Origin: Scyliorhinus canicula
Lineage: Eukaryota
Direction of reading: 5' to 3'
DNA: 64,000 nt
Assembly: GCF_902713615.1 (NCBI RefSeq)
Contig: NC_052147.1
Coordinates: forward strand, 12,225,664 to 12,289,663
In this document: one piece after another, positions 805 to 60,829 of the stretch
Layout of the letters: every line of letters starts with the position of its first letter
How positions within the stretch are numbered: position 1 is the first letter of the stretch
Notes under the pieces: generated by a model
What the model was told of the DNA's origin: nothing
Seen by the model: the letters and a program-made list of their open reading frames with translations, nothing else
Database searches by the model: none
Translations under genes and position numbers: made by a program

Positions 805-1301
805 GGGCGCGATTCTCCGCAAATGCGGAGAGTCGTAAAGGCTGGCGTGAAACTGGCCGTGTTTCACGGCAGCCTCCGCGCCCCCTCCCGGGACCCGATT
901 CTCCCCCCCGGGCGGGGCTAGCAGCGCGGCCCCGCGAAGCACGGCATCGCGGCCTTAGCGACGGTCGCTACGCCCGCGCGCCAAGCATCACGGTGGCTGA
1001 CGCGCACGATGACGTGGTGCGGCCATGCCAATCGGTGCCATGGTTGTCCGGAATGGCACTTTGCGGCCGTTTTCACGAACGGTGAGAGCAGGTGTGTTTG
1101 CGTTCGTGAAAACGGCCTTAAAGGCCTGGGAACTCGGCCCATCGGCCTGGGGAGAATCGCTGTTCGCCGTAAAAAACGGCGAGCAGCGATTTGTGTCGTG
1201 GGGCGGCCGTGGGGGGGGAGAATAGCGGGAGGTCGGGAAAAATGTCGGGAAGGCCCTCCCGCTATTCTCCGACCCGTCGTGGGCAGCGGAGAATCGCGCC
1301 C
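805..1301. mobile_element. CpG-rich MITE, PIF/Harbinger-like
   Basis: Perfect 16-bp TIR GGGCGCGATTCTCCGC...GCGGAGAATCGCGCCC; flanks ATG/CTG (near 3-bp TSD); opposite-orientation relative of 33646-34384. Confidence 0.8.
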
Positions 1302-1907: not shown

Positions 1908-2528
1908 GGGCGCAATTCTCCCCCCCCCCCCCACCCACGCCGGGTGGGAGAATCGCGGGGGCGCCGGGCGAATCCTGCCATGCCGCCCCGGCACCCGCAC
2001 GCGATTCCCCCACACCCCCCAAAAACGGCGCGCCGGGATTTATGGATGGAGAATCAGATGGGCCGAGCGGCCTGCCCAATACGACGGGTTCACACCGGTG
2101 CCAACCACACCTGGTCGCTGCCGGCATGAACAGCGCGTGAACGCTGCGGAGGTGGCCTGTGGGGGGGGGGGGGGGAGGGAGGATCGAGCACAGAAGGGGT
2201 CTGGCCCGCGATCGGTGCCCACCGAATGGCGGGCCAGCGTCTCTGAAGGACGCACTCTTTTACTCCGCCGCCCCGCAAGATCACTCCTCCATTTCTGGCA
2301 GGGAGTCCGTGGGGAGGACGGTAACCTGCCCATGCCCGGTTGACGTCATTTACGCGGCGCCGCTTTTATGCGGCGCCAAGGCCCGGCGTACGTAAATGAC
2401 GTGTCGCCGCTCCTAGCCCCCTGGAGGTGGGAGAATAGGGGCGAGGAGCGGCCTCCGACGCCGGAGTGAAACACTCCGTTTTTCACTCCGGCGTCGGCAC
2501 TTAGTTTCCCGTTGGGAGAATCCCGCCC
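1908..2528. mobile_element. CpG-rich MITE, PIF/Harbinger-like
   Basis: TIR GGGCGCAATTCTCC...GGAGAATCCCGCCC; exact 3-bp TSD GTT at 1905-1907 and 2529-2531. Confidence 0.85.
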
Positions 2529-5318: not shown

Positions 5319-6455
5319 TCTAAGCACGGGAAGGATGGTATTAAGCGATATAGAACAAAGGTAGGTAACTGGATTAAGATACAGATCAGCCACGATCTCA
5401 CTGAATAGCGAAACAGGCTTAAGGGGTTGAGCGGCCTAGTAACAGCTCAGGGAACTGACTGGGGATCGAGTGATGGGAATAACTACAAAGACATCTGTGC
5501 GCCAGTGGAAGCTGGAATTTCAGCATTGCCTTGCCAATGTATTAAGGAGATTGGCACATCTCCTCATTATTCAATGTTGCCTCATTGTGCCGATGCACCG
5601 ACGTTGTGCGAAGACCCTGCAGTTCAATAGCCTCCTCTCCATTGTGGGGGGTATGTTTGCATCGGGATATCAGTCAAGCAGCCACTTCCAGACAGCACTG
5701 CTGCCCCAGTTGGTCAGCTAGTTCAGCACAGACCCCGTGGGATCTTCCCAGTCCAGCTGGCTGAGATTCACATGGTGCAGTACATTTACCAACTGGACTA
5801 AATATTACTTTGTTTTATTAACCCATGAAGAGTAAGAGGGAATACACACCACAGAAACCAGGTCATTCTGCACAACTGGTCCATGGCTAGGTTTATGCTC
5901 TGCAGCGACCTTGACCCAGCTTTCCTCATCCAAACCCTTCAACATCTCCTTCTATCCCTTTCTCCCTCATGTGCTGAATGCCCTTAAATGCATCCATGCT
6001 ATTTTTCCAAATACCCCATGTGGTAACAGGCTCCACATTGAAATCACTCTTTGAGTAACCATGTTTTTATTTTTTGAATCCCCTATTGGATTTACTTGTG
6101 ACTGTCTTATGTTTGTGACCCTATCGTTGGGCCTGTTCCTGTGCTGTACTCTTCTTTGTTCTTTGAACTCAGCCAACCACTCGATCTTCTTGGGCTCTTT
6201 AGTCCGCACATACATGTGAACACCTGAATTAGGAGCAGGAGTAGGCCACTCGGCCCCTTGGGCCCGCTCTGCATTTAATAAGATCGTGGCTGAACAACCC
6301 CATATTCCTGCTGAGCCCGATAACCTTCCCCCCTCCCTTCCCCCTCTAACCTTTACCCCCCACCCCCTTGTTAATCAATAATCTACCTGGCTCTGCCTTA
6401 AAAACATTCAAAGACCGGAAGGCATTCAAGAACTCACCACCCTCTGAGAGACACC

Positions 6456-7927
6456 AGGCAGGATTCACTCAGCCCGGGGCCGGGCCGGAGAATACCCGTG
6501 ATCAGCGCAAATCGCGCCACGCCGCCCCGACGCCGGCGCCCAATCCCCGCAGAGCGGAGAATCGGCACCATTGGCGCCAGCGTGGTTGGCGTGGCGCTGG
6601 TCGGGATCCGCACTACACGGCCGACCCGCCGATTCTCGGCCCGGGATGGGCCAAGCGGCCGTCATAAATAACCCCGAGTCCCGTCGGCGCCGTTCACACC
6701 TGCTCTCAGCCGGCAGGACCTCGGTGTGGAAGGGTCTGGAAGCGGCCTGAGGAGGGGGGGGGCCCTCCGATGTGGCCTGGCCCGCGATCGGGGCCCACCG
6801 ATTGGTGGGCCGCCCTCTCTGGACGGAGGCCTCCTTTCTTCCACGCCGGCCCCTGTAGCCCGGCGGCATGTTGCATTGGGGCCGGCGCGGAGAAGGGAGC
6901 CACTGCGCATGTGCGCGTTGGTGCCGGTGCCATTGGGCATGCGGGTGTTGGTGCCGGTGCCATTGGGCATGCGGGTGTTGGTGCCGGTGCCATTGGGCAT
7001 GCGGGTGTTGGTGCCGGTGCCATTGGGCATGCGGGTGTTGGTGCCGGTGCCATTGGGCATGCGGGTGTTGGTGCCGGTGCCATTGGGCATGCCGCGTTGG
7101 TGCCGGTGCCATTGGGCATGCCGCGTTGGTGCCGGTGCCATTGGGCATGCCGCGTTGGTGCCGGTGCCATTGGGCATGCGGGTGTTGGTGCCGGTGCCGT
7201 TGGGCATGCGGGTGTTGGTGCCGGTGCCATTGGGCATGCGGGTGTTGGTGCCGGTGCCATTGGGCATGCGCGCGTTGGTGCCGGTGCCATTGGGCATGCG
7301 GGTGTTGGTGCCGGTGCCGTTGGGCATGCGGGTGTTGGTGCCGGTGCCATTGGGCATGCGGGTGTTGGTGCCGGTGCCATTGGGCATGCGCGCGTTGGTG
7401 CCGGTGCCATTGGGCATGCGGGTGTTGGTGGTGGTGCCATTGGGCATGCGGGTGTTGGTGCAGGTGCCATTGGGCATGCGGGTGTTGGTGCAGGTGCCAT
7501 TGGGCATGTGGGTGTTGGTGCCGGTGCCATTGGGCATGCATGTGTTGGTGCCGGTGCCATTGGGCATGCGCGCGTTGGTGCCGGTGCCATTGGGCATGCG
7601 GGTGTTGGTGCCGGTGCCATTGGGCATGCGCGCGTTGGTGCCGGTGCCATTGGGCATGCGGGTGTTGGTGCAGGTGCCATTGGCCATGCGGGTGTTGGTG
7701 CCGGTGCCATTGGGCATGCGCGCGTTGGTGCCGGTGCCATTGGGCATGTGCGGACCCCACGGCGCCCAGTTCACGCCAGGATCAGCAGTTGGATCGCTCC
7801 AGTGCTGTGGTGGGCCCCCTGTAGGGGCCAGAATTGCTGATCCTAAGGCCATGTTGAGCCCGTCGAGAAACACAACGGCGTTTCCGACGGCGTCAACACT
7901 TAGCCTCAGGATCACAGAATCCCGCCC
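6456..7927. mobile_element. PIF/Harbinger-like MITE carrying an internal minisatellite
   Basis: AGGCAGGATTC...GAATCCCGCCC ends, exact TSD ACC (6453-6455, 7928-7930), family palindrome GGCCCGCGATCGGGGCCCACCGAT at 6779. Confidence 0.8.
6899..7752. repeat. 30-bp minisatellite (GCGGGTGTTGGTGCCGGTGCCATTGGGCAT)n, about 28 units
   Basis: Direct tandem periodicity; three 29-bp units around 7091-7177 shift the register. Confidence 0.97.
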
Positions 7928-8123: not shown

Positions 8124-8290
8124 GGGCTGGATTCTCCGCCAGCGGGATGCTCCCTTTTGCCGACAGCTCGGGGGTTTCCCGACGGCGTGGGGCTGCCCCA
8201 CAATGGGAAACCCCATTGACCAGCCGGCGTAATGGAGCATCCCGCCGGCCGTGCTGAAACAGAAATGTGGCGGGGCAGAGAATCCAGCCC
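8124..8290. mobile_element. Short MITE of the same TIR class
   Basis: GGGCTGGATTCTC...GAGAATCCAGCCC perfect 13-bp TIR; inserted in CR1 sequence; no clear TSD. Confidence 0.75.
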
Positions 8291-36176: not shown

Positions 36177-38350
36177 CTGTCACACTGTACCCCAGTACAG
36201 CCAGTGTCGTGACAGTGTACCCCAGTACAGACAGTGCTGTGACAGTGTACTCCAGTACAGACAGTGCCGTGACAGTGTACCCCAGTACAGCCAGTGCCGT
36301 GACAGTGTACCCCAGTACAGACAGTGCTGTGACAGTGTAACCCAGTACAGACAGTGCCATGACAGTGTACCCCAGTACAGACAGTGCCGTGACAGTGTAC
36401 CCCGGTATAGCCAGTGTCGTGACAGTGTACCCCAGTACAGCCAGTGTCGTGACAGTGTACCCCAGTACAGACAGTGCCGTGACAGTGTACCCCAGTACAG
36501 ACAGTGCCATGACAGTGTACCCCAGTACAGACAGTGCCGTGACAGTGTACCCCAGTACAGACAGTGCCGTGACAGTGTAACCCAGTACAGACAGTGCCGT
36601 GACAGTGTACCCCAGTACAGACAGTGCCATGACAGTGTATCCCAGTACAGACAATGCCATGACAGTGTACCCCAGTACAGACAGTGCCGTGACAGTGTAC
36701 CCCAGTACAGACAGTGCCGTGACAGTGTACCCCAGTACAGACAGTGCCGTGACAGTGTAACCCAGTACAGACAGTGCCGTGACAGTGTACCCCAGTACAG
36801 ACAGTGCCGTGACAGTGTACCCCAGTACAGACAGTGTCGTGACAGTGTAACCCAGTACAGACAATGCCATGACAGTGTACCCCAGTACAGACAGTGCCGT
36901 GACAGTGTACCCCAGTACAGCCAGTGCCGTGACAGTGTACCCCAGTACAGACAGTGCTGTGACAGTGTAACCCAGTTCAGACAGTGCCATGACAGTGTAA
37001 CCCAGTACAGACAGTGCCGTGACAGTGTACCCCAGTACAGACAGTGCCGTGACAGTGTACCCCAGTACAGACAGTGCCGTGACAGTGTACCCCAGTACAG
37101 ACAGTGCCGTGACAGTGTACCCCAGTACAGCCAGTGCCATGACACTGTACCCTAGTACAGACACTGCCAGAACAGTGTACCCCAGTTCAGACAGTGCCGT
37201 GACACTGTACCCCAGTACAGACAGTGCTGTGACACTGTATTCCAGTAAAGACAGTGTTGTGGCACTGTATCCCAGTACAGACAGTTTTGTGACACTGTAT
37301 CCCAGTACAGACAGTGTTGTGACACTGTATCCCAGTACAGACAGTGCTGTGCCATGACACCCCAGTACAGACAGTGCTGTGACACTGTACCCCAGTACAG
37401 ACAGTGCTGTGACACTGTACCCTAGTGCAGACACTGCCATAACAGTGTACCCCAGTTCAGACAGTGCCGTTACACTGTACCCCAGTACAGGCGGTGCTGT
37501 GACACTGTATTCCAGTACAGACAGTGCCATGACAGTGTACCCCAGTACAGACAGTGCCGTGACAGTGTACCCCAGTACAGACAGTGCCGTGACAGCGTAA
37601 CCCAGTACAGACAGTGTCGTGACAGTGTACCCCAGTACAGACAGTGCCGTGACAGTGTAACCCAGTACAGACAGTGCCGTGACAGTGTACCCCAGTACAG
37701 ACAGTGCCGTGACAGTGTAACCCAGTACAGACAGTGCCGTGACACTGTACCCCAGTACAGACAGTGCCATGACAGTGTACCCCAGTACAGACAGTGCTGT
37801 GACACTGTATCCCAGTACAGACAGTGCTGTGACACTGTATTCCAGTACAGACAGTGTTGTGACACTGTACCCCAGTACAGACAGTGCTGTGACACTGTAC
37901 CCCAGTACAGACAGTGCTGTGACATTGTATCCAGTGCAGACAGTGTTGTGACACTGTACCCCAGTACAGACAGTGCTGTGACACTGTACCCCAGTACAGG
38001 CAGTGCTGTGACACTGTATCCCAGTACAGACAGTGTTGTGACACTGTACCCCAGTACAGACATTGCTGTGACACTGTACCCCAGTACAGGCAGTGCTGTG
38101 ACACTGTATCCCCGTACAGACAGTGTTGTGACACTGTACCCCAGTACAGACAGTGCTGTGATACTGTACCCCAGTACAGACAGTGTTGTGGCACTGTATC
38201 CCAGTACAGACAGTGCTGTGATACTGTACCCCAGTACAGGCAGTGCTGTGACACTGTATCCCAGTACAGACAGTGTTGTGACACTGTACCCCAGTACAGA
38301 CAGTGCTGTGACACTGTATCCCAGTACAGACAGTGTTGTGACACCGTACT
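36177..38350. repeat. 30-bp minisatellite (GTGACAGTGTACCCCAGTACAGACAGTGCC)n, about 72 units
   Basis: Direct periodicity; one 1-bp register shift near 37930. Confidence 0.98.
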
Positions 38351-38789: not shown

Positions 38790-41700
38790 CATTATTCCCG
38801 CAGAATTATCAATCCCGCAAATTATCAATCCCGCAAAACTCTCAATCCTGCAGCATTATTAATCCCACAGAATTATCAATCCTGCAGCGTTATCATTCCC
38901 GCAGTAGCCTTGCAGAATTATACGTCCCGCAGAATTATAAATCTCGCAGCATTATTAATCCATTAGTATTCTCACAGAATTATAAATCCACAGCATTGAC
39001 AATATTGCAGAATTAACAATCCCACAGCATTCCTGCAGGATTATCAATCCCAGAGCATTATCACTGCCACAGTATTATGTAGAATTATCAATCCTGCAGA
39101 TTTATCAATCCCACAGAATTATGAATCCCACAGAATTATCAATCCTGCAGAATTATCAATCCCACAGAATTATCAATACCATAGAATTATCAATCCCGCA
39201 GGATAATCAATCCCGTAAATTATCAATCCCGCAGAATTATCAATTCTGCAGTATTTCCGCAGAATTATCAATCCCACAGAATTATCAATCCCGCAGAATT
39301 ATAAATCCCGCAGAAATATCAATCCCGCAGAATTATCAATCCTGCAGTATTTCTGCAGAATTATCAATCCCGCAGAATTATCAATCCCACAGAATTATCA
39401 ATCCCACAGAATTATCAACCCCACAGAATTATCAATCCCGCAGAATTATCAATCCCGCAGAATTATCAATCCCACAGAATTATCAATCCCACAGCAATTA
39501 TCAATCCCGCAGAATTATCAATCCCGCAGAATTATCAATCCTGCAGTATTATCAATAACGCAGTATTCCAGCAGAATTATCAATCCCACAGAATTATCAA
39601 TCCCGCAGTATTATCAATAACGCAGAATTAACAATCCCGCAGAATTATCAATCCCGCAGAATTATCAATCCCGCAGAATTATCAATAACGCTGTAGTCCA
39701 GCAGCATTATCAATCCCGCAGAATTATCAATAACGCAGTATTCCAGCAGTATTATCAATCCCGCAGAATTATCAATAACGCAGTATTCCAGCAGCATTAT
39801 CAATCCCGCAGAATGATCAATAACGCAGTATTCCAGCAGAATTATCAATCCCGCAGAATTATCAATAACGCAGTATTCCAGCAGCATTATCAATCCCACA
39901 GAATTATCAATAACGCAGTATTCCAGCAGCATTATCAATCCCGCAGAATTATCAATAACGCAGTATTCCAGCAGCATTATCAATCCCACAGAATTATCAA
40001 TAACGCTGTATTCCAGCAGCATTATCAATTCCGCAGAATTATCAATCCCGCAGTGTTCCAGCAGCATTATCAATCCCGCAGAATTATCAATAACGCTGTA
40101 TTCCAGCAGCATTATCAATCCCGCAGAATTATCAATAACGCTGTATTCCAGCAGCATTATCAATCCCGCAGAATTATCAATAACGCTGTATTCCAGCAGC
40201 ATTATCAATCCCGCAGAATTATCAATAACGCAGTATTCCAGCAGCATTATCAATCCCGCAGAATTATCAATAACGCTGTATTCCAGCAGCATTATCAATC
40301 CCGCAGAATTATCAATAACGCAGTATTCCAGCAGCATTATCAATCCCGCAGAATTATCAATAACGCAGTATTCCAGCAGCATTATCAATTCCGCAGAATT
40401 ATCAATCCCGCAGTGTTCCAGCAGCATTATCAATCCCGCAGAATTATCAATAACGCTGTATTCCAGCAGCATTATCAATCCAGCAGAATTATCAATAACG
40501 CAGTATTCCAGCAGCATTATCAATCCCGCAGAATTATCAATAACGCTGTATTCCAGCAGCATTATCAATCCCGCAGAATTATCAATAACGCTGTATTCCA
40601 GCAGCATTATCAATCCCGCAGAATTATCAATAACGCAGTATTCCAGCAGCATTATCAATCCCGCAGAATTATCAATAACGCAGTATTCCAGCAGCATTAT
40701 CAATTCCGCAGAATTATCAATCCCGCAGTGTTCCAGCAGCATTATCAATCCCGCAGAATTATCAATAACGCTGTATTCCAGCAGCATTATCAATCCAGCA
40801 GAATTATCAATAACGCAGTATTCCAGCAGCATTATCAATCCCGCAGAATTATCAATAACGCTGTATTCCAGCAGCATTATCAATCCCGCAGAATTATCAA
40901 TAACGCTGTATTCCAGCAGCATTATCAATCCCGCAGAATTATCAATAACGCAGTATTCCAGCAGCATTATCAATCCCGCAGAATTATCAATAACGCTGTA
41001 TTCCAGCAGCATTATCAATCCCGCAGAATTATCAATAACGCAGTATTCCAGCAGCATTATCAATCCCGCAGAATTATCAATAACGCAGTATTCCAGCAGC
41101 ATTATCAATCCCGCAGAATTATCAATAACGCTGTATTCCAGCAGCATTATCAATCCCGCAGAATTACCAATAACGCAGTATTCCAGCAGCATTATCAATC
41201 CCGCAGAATTATCAATAATGCAGTATTCCAGCAGCATTATCAATCCCGCAGAATTATCAATAACGCAGTATTCCAGCAGCATTATCAATCCCGCAGAATT
41301 ATCAATAACGCAGTATTCCAGCAGCATTATCAATCCCGCAGAATTATCAATAACGCAGAATTATCAATAACGCAGTATTCCAGCAGCATTATCAATCCCG
41401 CAGAATTATCAATAACGCAGTGTTCCAGCAGCATTATCAATCCCGCAGAATTATCAATAACGCAGAATTATCAATAATGCAGTATTCCAGCAGCATTATC
41501 AATCCCGCAGAATTATCAATAACGCAGTGTTCCAGCAGCATTATCAATCCCGCAGAATTATCAATAACGCAGAATTATCAATAACGCAGTATTCCAGCAG
41601 CATTATCAATCCCGCAGAATTATCAATAACGCAGAATTCCAGCAGCATTATCAATCCCGCGGAATTATCAATAACGCTGTATTCCAGCAGCATTATCAAT

Positions 41701-41890
41701 CCCGCAGAATTATCAATAACGCAGTATTCCAGCAGCATTATCAATCCCGCAGAATTATCAATAACGCTGTATTCCAGCAGCATTATCAATCCCGCAGAAT
41801 TATCAATAACGCAGAATTCCAGCAGCATTATCAATCCCGCGGAATTATCAATAACGCTGTATTCCAGCAGCACTATCAATCCCGCAGTAC
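38790..41890. repeat. Tandem array: 17-bp monomer GCAGAATTATCAATCCC grading into a 45-bp higher-order unit
   Basis: 17-bp spacing at 39423/39440; from ~39680 the unit is GCAGAATTATCAATAAC+GCAGTATTCCA+GCAGCATTATCAATCCC (17+11+17). Confidence 0.97.
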
Positions 41891-52397: not shown

Positions 52398-52874
52398 GGG
52401 AGCGATTCTCCGCTGCCCAGGCCGGGTGGGAGAATCGTGGGAGGGCCGCTCTGGCACCCCCCCCCCCCCCCCCCCCCCGGAGGATGGGCCGAGCGGCCTG
52501 CCGTTCCCGACCTGTTCACGCCGGCGGCAACCACACCTGATCGCTGCCGGCGTAAACACAGCGCAAATGGTGAGTATGGGGCCTGTGGGGGGCGGAGAGG
52601 GGAGCGAGCATCACGGCCCTGCTCGGGAGGGGACTGGCCCGCGATCGGTGCCCACCGATCGTCGGGCCCACGTCTGCAAGAGACGCACTCTTTCCCCTCC
52701 GCCGCCCCGCAAGATCAAGCCGCCACGTCTTGCGGGGCAGCGGAGGGGTCGCTCCTAGCCCTCTGGGGGGGGGGAGAATAGGGGGCGAGGAGCGATGAGG
52801 TGTGGCGCCTCCGACGCCGTTGTGAAACACTCCGGGTTTCACAACGGCATCGGGCGTTGCGAAGAATTCCGCCC
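52398..52874. mobile_element. PIF/Harbinger-like MITE
   Basis: GGGAGCGATTCTCCGC...GCGAAGAATTCCGCCC; exact TSD AAG (52395-52397, 52875-52877). Confidence 0.85.
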
Positions 52875-58780: not shown

Positions 58781-59593
58781 GTTTATGTCTCACATTATTG
58801 TTCTGGGAGCTGGTTTTGAGCAAACTGGCTGTCACCTTTATTTATTTTATTATTTTATTTGCTACATTACGCCAGTTGCTACACTTCAGGAGTTACCGCA
58901 TTGGCTTACTTTGTTGCATTCAGTACTTAGGTTGTACTTAGGACTACAGGTGGTATCAAGTTTCTGGTGAATCCCTCGATGAATATGGACATTGGTGAGG
59001 GGATCTCATAGCCATTTGCGGATTTCACACATCAAGGGCGGGATTCTCCCGCAACTGGACGGATGGCCCGATGCCGGCGCCAAGAGTGGCGTGAACCACT
59101 CCGGCGTCAGGAAGTTGCGGAATCCTCCGTTTCACACTGGACAAAGGGGAAAATCAAAACTCAATGGCCACCACCAACTTCCCATTGTATCACGATTGAC
59201 TCCTACATCTAAACTGGACTGAATGGACCTCATACATGTTAACCCAGAGGTCATTTGATCACAACGGTTTTCCACGACTGCACCGTCATTACTGCAGGCC
59301 CCGACAGATTCATTACTACCATCAGTCACTGCCGGTTCGGAGAACCAGAGCCCAAAACTAGCTGCCGGTCATCAAGCAGCCAAAGTACAAAACCTGTCCC
59401 AGTTTCAATGTTTACCTGAGAACCAGCCTCATAGATATTCGACTGCCAAGAAACTTTGCAACCTGTCGTGAATCCTTCCTTTTACAAGTCCCTCATTTCA
59501 ATTTTAAACCACGGAATCCATTCATGAAGCCACAGGAGAGATTGGGAATCATGAATCGGAGACTGAATTAACTCTAATCTGTAAAAATGCACT

Positions 59594-59781
59594 GGGCTGG
59601 ATTCTCCATCGGCAGAATCCTCCGTTTCACTCGCTGCGTACTCACACCCGTGGATTTCCTGAAGGCGTGGGCGTGCCCACAATGGGAAACCCCATTGGCT
59701 GGCTGCCGGGACAGAGAATCCTGCTGCCGGCGGGGAAGCACCACAGCAGAAAAAGGGTGTGGCAGGATGGAGAATCCCACA
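59594..59781. mobile_element. Short MITE of the Harbinger-like TIR class
   Basis: GGGCTGGATTCTCCATC...GATGGAGAATCCCAC; CCCACAATGGGAAACCCCATTG shared with 8124-8290. Confidence 0.7.
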
Positions 59782-60263
59782 TCCTGTCTTTATCAGTATC
59801 CAGTCAGTATGTGGATATGTGTGTGTGCATGCATATTCATGTGTGTGCGCTTGTGTCCTTGTGTACGTGTGCACATGTGTGTGTGCATATGCGTGCATGT
59901 GTGTGTGTTTGTGCACGTGGCTGAGTATGTGATTTTGCATTTAGGGTAAGTATATAAGAATAAATAATCTTCATTATTTTAAACTCACAAAAGCTTGCTG
60001 CTGAATTAATTAATTGGAACACACCCTCCAAAAGCAAGAAGAAATATGCCTTTCCCATATAAAATATACCGATTGGAGGCAGTAAGAGAGAAGATACCTT
60101 CTACTTGTGATATGAGTGAAATTCTTATCATCACCTGAATTGTTCAGCCATACTGCCCAATCGCAGAATCACATCTTACATTAGCCATTATACCCCGAGT
60201 TTTGGAATTTCCAGTTCCATTTTCTTGAGGCCGTAGACACCATCTCTAAAGGCATCAACACTT

Positions 60264-60596
60264 GGGGCAGCACGGTAGCACAAGTGGCTAGCACTGAGGT
60301 TTCGCAGCGCCAGGGTGCCAGGTTCGATTCCCGGCTTGGGTCACTGTCTGTGCGGAGTCTGCACGTTCTCCCCGTGTCTGCGTGGGTTTCCTCCGGGTGC
60401 TCCGGGATCCTCCCACAGTCCAAAGCCGAGCAGGTTGGGTGGATTGGCCATGTCAAATTGCCCTTAGTGACCAAAAAGGTTAGGATGGGTTATTGGGTGA
60501 CGGGGATAGGGTGGAAGTTGGGGCTTAAGTGGGTCGGTGCAGACTCGATGGGCCGAATGGCCTCCTTCTGCACTGTTTGTTCTATGTTCTATGTTC
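60264..60596 (+). mobile_element. HE1-like V-SINE
   Basis: Full-length, (GTTCTAT)n end. Confidence 0.9.
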
Positions 60597-60829
60597 CAGC
60601 CAGTGGTGCAGTCTTGCACTTGCCAACGTTCCACACACCCCTCAGCAATGTGTGTGAGTTAGAGAGTCAGTGTACCGACCTGTGCAGTCCTGTGCCATAC
60701 AGATAAAGCAGGGTCTGTATTCAGTTAGCTAATCTTCAGGAGCAGCATGCACGGTGTTGCATTTGAAACCGGGCCCTCCTCAACCAGGAAGCATGCAAAT
60801 CATTCTGGGCTCCTGGTTGTTACCCAATG

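Follow-up and report, generated by a model that had tools for sequence, protein, structure and literature searches.

Internal palindromes with covarying arms in an abundant non-autonomous DNA transposon family of Scyliorhinus canicula

The window analyzed here is a stretch of 64,000 nucleotides of the Scyliorhinus canicula genome (contig NC_052147.1, positions 12,225,664 to 12,289,663 of the forward strand). Positions 1908 to 2528 of the window are one complete copy, 621 bp long, of a non-coding transposon (copy B), with a GC content of 67% compared with about 45 to 50% in its surroundings. The copy begins with GGGCGCAATTCTCC, ends with the inverse of GGGCGGGATTCTCC, and is flanked on either side by GTT. 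The 14-bp end repeat, GGGCGSRATTCTCC, is inverted between the two ends. With up to two mismatches allowed it has 28 matches in the 64-kb window, where 1.3 are expected, and its core, GGAGAATC, occurs 29 times compared with 2.4 expected. Pairing of the ends gave seven complete elements in the window, designated A, B, C, D, E, G, and H. In a self-comparison of the window, copies A (in reverse), B, C, D, and E were collinear with 65 to 77% identity, and three fragments, F, J, and K, were also collinear with copy B. The mean column identity over the five full copies was 61% in a MAFFT alignment (A1). The copies, the related elements, and the hairpins (H) of copy B are as follows.

805..1301, reverse strand: copy A, 497 bp, which lacks H6 to H9 through an internal deletion; its H5 is at 1065-1117
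1908..2528, forward strand: copy B, 621 bp; its inverted ends occupy 1908-1921 and 2515-2528, and the duplicated target GTT is at 1905-1907 and 2529-2531
2086..2133, forward strand: hairpin H5 of copy B, partly decayed, with the invariant loop core CACACCTG
2201..2237, forward strand: hairpin H7 of copy B, a palindrome whose sequence is conserved in copies B, C, D, and E and in fragment F, with no covariation
2342..2402, forward strand: central nested palindrome of copy B, with the CRE-like GACGTCA within its outer arms and an inner hairpin GGCGCCGC/GCGGCGCC
2406..2452, forward strand: hairpin H11 of copy B, a 14-bp stem with the end-like motif GGAGAAT in its loop
2455..2497, forward strand: hairpin H12 of copy B, a perfect 17-bp stem
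6440..6900, forward strand: fragment F, a partial and diverged copy in which H4, H5 (6676-6722), and H7 are present
7850..7927, forward strand: fragment J, from the right end; an H12-type hairpin occupies 7854-7896 and the end repeat 7914-7927
11149..11697: complete element G, with ends of the same type and a 3-bp duplication; its body is unrelated
13588..14228: complete element H, with ends of the same type and the duplication CTT; its body is unrelated
33646..34384, forward strand: copy C, 739 bp, the most complete copy, with target duplication GCT; its H5 is at 33844-33897
34762..35444, forward strand: copy D, 683 bp, inside another repeat; its H9 is at 35146-35184 and its H12 at 35370-35412
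52398..52874, forward strand: copy E, 477 bp, without H2 and H3, with target duplication AAG; its H9 is at 52694-52748 and its H12 at 52811-52853
59036..59140, reverse strand: truncated copy K, with an inverted end at 59036-59049 and a rearranged H12-type hairpin at 59068-59110

The hairpin modules follow the same order in all copies, namely H1, H2, H3, H5, H6, H7, H8, H9, a central block, H11, H12, and H13. A sequence-only reading of this DNA had stated that divergent copies keep the same ordered stem-loops, and the collinearity of the five full copies in alignment A1 bears this out. The terminal hairpin H1 consists of the end repeat and an inverted end-like copy of it. H5 is a long stem enclosing the loop CAAMCACACCTGNTC, and H7 is the palindrome GGCCCGCGATCGGT-GCCC-ACCGATCGCGGGCC. 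The central block, between H9 and H11, contains CRE-like and NRF1-like palindromes, of the TGACGTCA and GCGCATGCGC types. The end motif GGAGAATC recurs inside the element with alternating orientation (H1, H2, H11, and H13), and GGAGAAT lies within the loop of H11. In columns 1 to 110 of A1 (e.g., 33646-33745 and 1210-1301), the end repeat, an inverted end-like GGAGAATMGCG, and a third copy, ATTCTCC, alternate in orientation and thereby amount to a right-end-like/left-end-like junction within the element. The pair beside the end motif in these columns is A:T in copies A and C and C:G in copies B and D. Long poly-C/poly-G tracts lie at conserved places within the elements (1919-1933, 2161-2177, and 52455-52478) and could take part in long-range pairing or form other non-B DNA.

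Elements B, C, E, and H have perfect 3-bp target duplications (GTT, GCT, AAG, and CTT, respectively), and those of A, D, and G match at two of the three positions; the TWA target, TAA or TTA, is absent from all seven. Judged by its ends and its 3-bp duplication, together with its size and copy number, the family is probably a Tourist/Harbinger (PIF/Harbinger) MITE that does not follow the TWA rule. No transposase domain was found in the ten scanned open reading frames (ORFs) of at least 160 amino acids that lie outside the elements in the window. The longest ORF internal to the elements had no relatives, and a 181-amino-acid ORF inside copy D, searched as a route to gene calls on other assemblies, had no match. 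Elements with the same ends but only about 120 to 190 bp long are also present, at 8124-8290, 59594-59780, and about 1345-1465, and share a common core, ..CCCACAATGGGAAACCCCATTG... The window further contains three large minisatellites, at 36182-38343 (72 copies of a 30-bp unit), 39652-41887 (50 copies of a 45-bp unit with a 180-bp higher order), and 6899-7748 (28 copies of a GC-rich 30-bp unit); an ORF running through the 45-bp array gave zinc-finger Pfam matches, which are spurious. Dispersed through the window are also about 20 copies of a repeat of about 340 bp (e.g., 136-581, 27008-27318, and 60261-60606), which has a SINE-like look and no Rfam match.

The abundance of the family was estimated from the contigs of two DNA sequencing runs, placed on positions 33300 to 35800 at a likeness of at least 80%. 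About 20,000 and 14,600 contigs, respectively, were placed on this region. The summed word depth was 4 x 10^4 to 4 x 10^5 over copies C and D and about 10 to 100 on the unique flanks; this 10^3- to 10^4-fold excess is a sum of contig depths and not a calibrated copy number. These data show that the hairpin-chain family is very large. Copy D sits in another high-copy repeat (34554-34761 and 35449-35567), and several DNA contigs join 34761 directly to 35449; they represent paralogous versions of the host repeat without copy D. The bases skipped at these empty sites number 687, that is, the 683 bp of copy D plus a few flanking bases, and the joint thus supports the boundaries of this copy. A covariance model of H12 found two extra diverged copies in the window and, beyond these, only reverse strands of known palindromes. 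An exact scan of metagenome contigs for the conserved core of H7 gave no match.

Hairpins of at least 10 pairs, with at most one mismatch and a loop of 3 to 24 nucleotides, were counted in each element and in dinucleotide shuffles of it. Copies B, E, D, C, and A contained 4, 4, 2, 10, and 6 such hairpins, respectively, while the shuffles averaged 0.17 to 0.28 with a maximum of 2, so that hairpins are 15 to 40 times commoner in these copies than in shuffled sequence. Many of the stems are long and near-perfect, and some of the loops are only 3 to 5 nucleotides. The single-stranded DNA fold gave z = -8.4 for copy B and z = -22.2 for copy C. Copies A to E, which make up 4.7% of the 64-kb window, contain 24 of its 29 hairpins with 11 or more pairs, and the rest of the window showed no hairpin excess. 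Elements G and H contained zero and one hairpin of at least 10 bp, respectively, without enrichment. Since they carry the same ends and are not hairpin-rich, the hairpin excess is specific to this one family. G and H thereby form a natural control, in which the ends were mobilized without hairpin chains. A global RNAalifold consensus of the whole alignment gave long-range pairs of ends and homopolymer tracts, which were judged not to be meaningful, and the structures were therefore analyzed module by module. Automatic choice of the main hairpin in each block often took small inner helices, and duplex energies of half-blocks were used instead.

To compare the arms of the hairpins free of any alignment, the 5' half of each copy was combined in turn with the 3' halves of all copies for eight modules, and the best DNA duplex (with no G·T pairs) was computed. 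The duplexes formed by arms of the same copy summed to -637.5 kcal/mol, compared with -520.8 ± 19.6 kcal/mol for permuted partners, and none of 20,000 permutations reached the observed value. Because independent decay of a shared perfect ancestor gives no such difference between arms in cis and in trans, what was measured is coordinated change. The statement of the sequence-only reading that the stems co-vary is thus confirmed above chance for the modules as a whole. The comparison set comprised the five full copies and three fragments, and the independent compensatory events number perhaps 15 to 20, with phylogeny uncontrolled.

Three hairpin comparisons had been put forward in that reading, and their sequences were all found exactly where it had placed them. 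The first, H12 of copies B (2455-2497) and E (52811-52853), was described as a replacement of GA:TC by TT:AA on both arms with the loop CACTCCG kept; the replacement and the common start of the loop were confirmed. In alignments A2 and A7, 86 to 88% of the H12 cells were paired and both sides had changed in 7 of 17 pairs. The covariation score was 0.382 to 0.388, compared with 0.16 to 0.17 ± 0.04 in shuffles, none of which (0 of 500) reached it, and slid controls gave at most 0.14. Two adjacent pairs of H12 (columns 10 and 11) occur in five states in the five copies, GA, TT, TC, CC, and GC, each with its complement barring one mismatch in copy A. The second comparison, H5 of copies A (1065-1117) and C (33844-33897), differs by C:G versus T:A, and here too the covariation exceeded chance. 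Over six copies, 81 of 103 H5 cells were Watson-Crick pairs, compared with 57.6 ± 3.9 in shuffles (0 of 2,000 reached the observed count), and 13 of the 18 stem columns showed at least two Watson-Crick pair types. These counts include a manual register shift of two columns for copies A and C, whose 3' arm was misregistered by MAFFT. The third comparison, H9 of copies D (35146-35184) and E (52702-52740), does contain the proposed swap of G:C for C:G around an identical 13-nucleotide loop, but the single swap is not evidence above chance; H9 has two pairs with both sides changed, and 153 of 500 shuffles reached the same number.

Between close copies (B-E, E-D, and C-A, in one direction each), 11 pairs with both sides changed were still paired, compared with about 2.4 expected, and four with both sides changed were broken. 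One-sided differences that break a pair outnumbered compensated ones by about 5:1. Arm sequence changed with complementarity kept in H5, H12, H3, and H11. These results support the conclusion that something keeps the arms complementary while their sequence drifts, and the copies compared show pairing that has survived 25 to 40% sequence divergence between subfamilies through coordinated change. It is scarcely credible that this pattern arose by chance or as an alignment artifact, with GC-rich repeats folding anyway and five sequences mimicking covariation. The H9 comparison alone would fit such a reading, as would the manual register shift in H5, but it is rejected by the dinucleotide shuffles, the slid-partner controls, and the alignment-free duplex test.

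The behavior of H7 differed. Its arms paired equally well in cis and in trans in the duplex test, indicating that its sequence is simply conserved. This is what would be seen if the palindromes were two-fold symmetric protein sites that form no fold and bind the transposase, a Myb-like partner, or factors of CRE-/NRF1-like promoter sites from an autonomous parent. The excess and alternating orientation of GGAGAATC inside the element and the palindromes of its central part also agree with this. For protein sites, however, sequence should be conserved, yet the arms of the four modules named above change with their complementarity kept, and stems of 13 to 24 bp with loops of 10 to 19 nucleotides are atypical of dimer sites. 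Protein binding would thus account for H7, for the GGAGAAT repeats, and for the CRE/NRF1-like motifs of the central block but would leave the covarying stems unexplained, and as a reading of the whole chain it is quite unlikely.

The loops were compared with the stems and linkers by their mean column identity, which was 0.69 for stems, 0.68 for loops, and 0.57 for linkers. The loops were as conserved as the stems and more conserved than the linkers (P = 0.002), in line with the conserved loops claimed in the sequence-only reading, but strong conservation was limited to H5 (0.86), whose core CACACCTG is invariant in six copies, and H7 (1.0). The H12 loop, which had been offered as a conserved one, had an identity of 0.46 across five copies and is common only to B and E, the two closest copies. 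In H12 of copies B (2455-2497) and A (836-878), the loop nearly duplicates the start of the 3' arm (CACTCCG and CACGGCC, respectively), so that two alternative pairings are open to the 5' arm. In H12 of copy E, both arms have changed and the loop still has the old sequence.

Covariation of this kind defines RNA families, with H12 and H5 exceeding all shuffles and H9 not, and sequence of this family was found in RNA-type libraries. Pairing could accordingly have been selected at the RNA level, in an element transcript or in small-RNA precursors, and an internal RNA fold was among the structures proposed from the sequence. No Rfam match at gathering score was obtained in the whole 64-kb window. 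In one oligo-dT RNA library, 386 reads were placed on a 2.5-kb stretch, on both strands at a similarly low depth (0 to 27) and mostly from other copies, and no discrete, strand-specific transcript was seen. Only 3 of the 386 reads were at least 99% alike, about 60% ran on into unrelated sequence, and the sole pile-up of read starts, at 35475, is outside the element. The presence of both strands, of reads from other copies, and of run-on sequence indicates passive co-transcription of other copies. Stem mismatches comprised 11 G·T and 9 A·C, which is no excess of G·T and no strand bias, and wobble accounted for about 20% of one-sided changes, not above expectation. Loops of 3 to 5 nucleotides and perfect palindromes such as H7 also suit DNA palindromes better than a structured RNA. 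Complementarity is thus kept, as had been proposed, but a fold at the RNA level is without support, its reading is weakly contradicted by these data, and we consider it very unlikely.

The fate of the hairpins after insertion was studied at 21 positions in copies C or D, taken from the best-supported 40 of 418 variant rows, at which nearly all family contigs carry another letter. The family letter was put into the local sequence (±45 nucleotides), which was refolded as DNA. In this sample, the family letter stabilized the fold by at least 1.8 kcal/mol at nine positions (33707, 34072, 34111, 34130, 34221, 34322, 35116, 35265, and 35376) and destabilized it at one (33968, with a loss of 1.1 kcal/mol). 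At the remaining 11 positions, the change was neutral (at most 0.6 kcal/mol); these lie in loops or linkers or are positions 35324 and 35364. None of the 21 sampled private changes in C or D was accompanied by a private change at the partner position. The stabilization by family letters indicates that the source elements had better-paired stems and that inserted copies decay uncompensated. Pairing is therefore maintained only along the propagating lineage and not in inserted copies. CpG decay was considered as the main cause of the private stem-breaking changes and rejected; about four of the first six fit, and across the stems (45 mismatches in total) only 6 of 20 transition-type mismatches were in a TG/CA context.

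Self-complementarity can also be maintained by mutation without selection, when one arm is copied from the other through intrastrand template switching or through repair synthesis templated by the hairpin, so that quasi-palindromes become perfect once more. Template switching creates and maintains perfect stems and can produce apparent compensatory substitutions in one step (PMC8794818). The stems of this family are long and perfect, and many of the compensated changes are adjacent dinucleotides (GA:TC, TT:AA, and TC:GA in columns 10 and 11 of H12; CC:GG versus AA:TT in H5 and H3) or register shifts, which give some copies replacement hairpins (H3 of D and H9 of B). Such clustering speaks against selection and looks more like segmental copying than stepwise selection. 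The near-duplication of the 3' arm in the H12 loop of B and A and the mobility of elements that have the same ends and no hairpin chains also favor template switching. Its most plausible setting would be the gap-repair synthesis that restores the donor after excision, which would track propagation and would also make new, register-shifted hairpins. Against it, the resting copies are not corrected; in the sample of private changes, nine weaken hairpins, one strengthens, and none is compensated. A general mutational process would also leave unexplained why the rest of the window and elements G and H show no excess, and a neutral process does not predict the conservation of two loops and several short blocks above the linkers. 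The sequence-only reading had named neutral template-switch correction as an alternative; the present data leave it viable if it is coupled to propagation, whereas slow correction in place fits poorly by itself. On balance, we regard maintenance by mutation alone as possible, if on the unlikely side.

The explanation that we tentatively prefer, although we would not yet call it probable, is that the copies belong to one very abundant family of non-autonomous cut-and-paste DNA transposons whose body consists of about a dozen ordered DNA palindromes and whose source elements are selected for self-pairing at the DNA level. The palindromes would act either on DNA that is transiently single-stranded, by snapping back into hairpins, or on supercoiled DNA, as cruciforms, and some of them may present short conserved motifs, such as CACACCTG in H5 and the end-like GGAGAAT in H11. 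Loss of pairing would make source elements less easily mobilized or recopied, and the stems would be preserved by selection on the element rather than on the host. Because the arms change together between copies and private changes do nothing but break pairs, it is only the line still copying itself that retains self-complementarity; the coordinated change, the unmaintained resting copies, and the family specificity together tie maintenance to propagation. The hairpins are not needed for mobilization as such, since G, H, and the short elements have the same ends, intact, and target duplications without hairpin chains. The transposase does not appear to need the palindromes strictly; they look like a feature, peculiar to this family, that enhances amplification.

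How MITEs, moved by a cut-and-paste enzyme, come to number tens of thousands of copies has long been a puzzle, and the sequence inside them is generally regarded as dispensable. A family that keeps a dozen internal palindromes paired across about 25 to 40% divergence, yet decays once inserted, offers a testable handle on this puzzle. The alternatives are that DNA secondary structure amplifies transposition in cis and that palindromes are written into elements by repair synthesis linked to transposition. Either outcome would be informative both for transposon biology and for how large vertebrate genomes acquire hairpin-forming, fragile, or regulatory DNA. A more specific proposal, which we consider unlikely, is that this is a vertebrate DDE (Harbinger-type) cut-and-paste family that relies on internal DNA hairpins or cruciforms to spread. 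These would be structure-specific cis elements whose stem sequence is free and whose loop motifs are fixed, much as in the bacterial REP/IS200-type systems. If correct, the proposal would place a structure-dependent step in eukaryotic MITE amplification. To our knowledge, no such step is known for the DDE transposases of the PIF/Harbinger superfamily, and our literature search found no paper giving one for Harbinger-type enzymes.

Three kinds of known systems resemble the elements described here. The quasi-palindromes made by template switching share the perfect stems, the clustered multibase compensatory changes, and the appearance of new stems in one step, but they were described in RNA genes and in genomes at large, whereas the effect seen here is confined to one transposon family and is unseen in its resting copies (PMC8794818). 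The bacterial REP/BIME elements, which are mobilized by RAYT, and the subterminal hairpins of IS200/IS605 are likewise clusters of GC-rich imperfect palindromes whose stems drift while pairing and a short motif are kept. In these systems, HUH/Y1 enzymes recognize the structure, a hairpin with a conserved tetranucleotide, specifically on single-stranded DNA. They have neither inverted ends nor a target duplication, whereas the copies described here have both, as DDE cut-and-paste elements do, and lie in a repeat-rich eukaryote, and the bacterial systems are therefore an analogue only and do not include this family. Tourist-like PIF/Harbinger MITEs, such as mPing and the Angel-type elements of zebrafish, are short, non-coding, and present in high copy number with a 3-bp duplication, have inverted ends starting with GGG or GGC, and carry end-like motifs that recur near the ends. 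The secondary structure of a classical MITE is essentially the fold-back of its two ends. In the literature covered, outside which most subscription journals lie, no covarying internal hairpin chains in eukaryotic MITEs and no direct precedent of a shark Harbinger MITE were found. The present family differs from the Tourist-like MITEs in its duplicated targets, which are GTT, GCT, CTT, and AAG rather than their usual TWA, and in its body, an ordered set of about a dozen distinct palindromes with arms that co-vary between subfamilies. What is new here is the copy-to-copy comparison of these palindromes and the read-based evidence of their decay.
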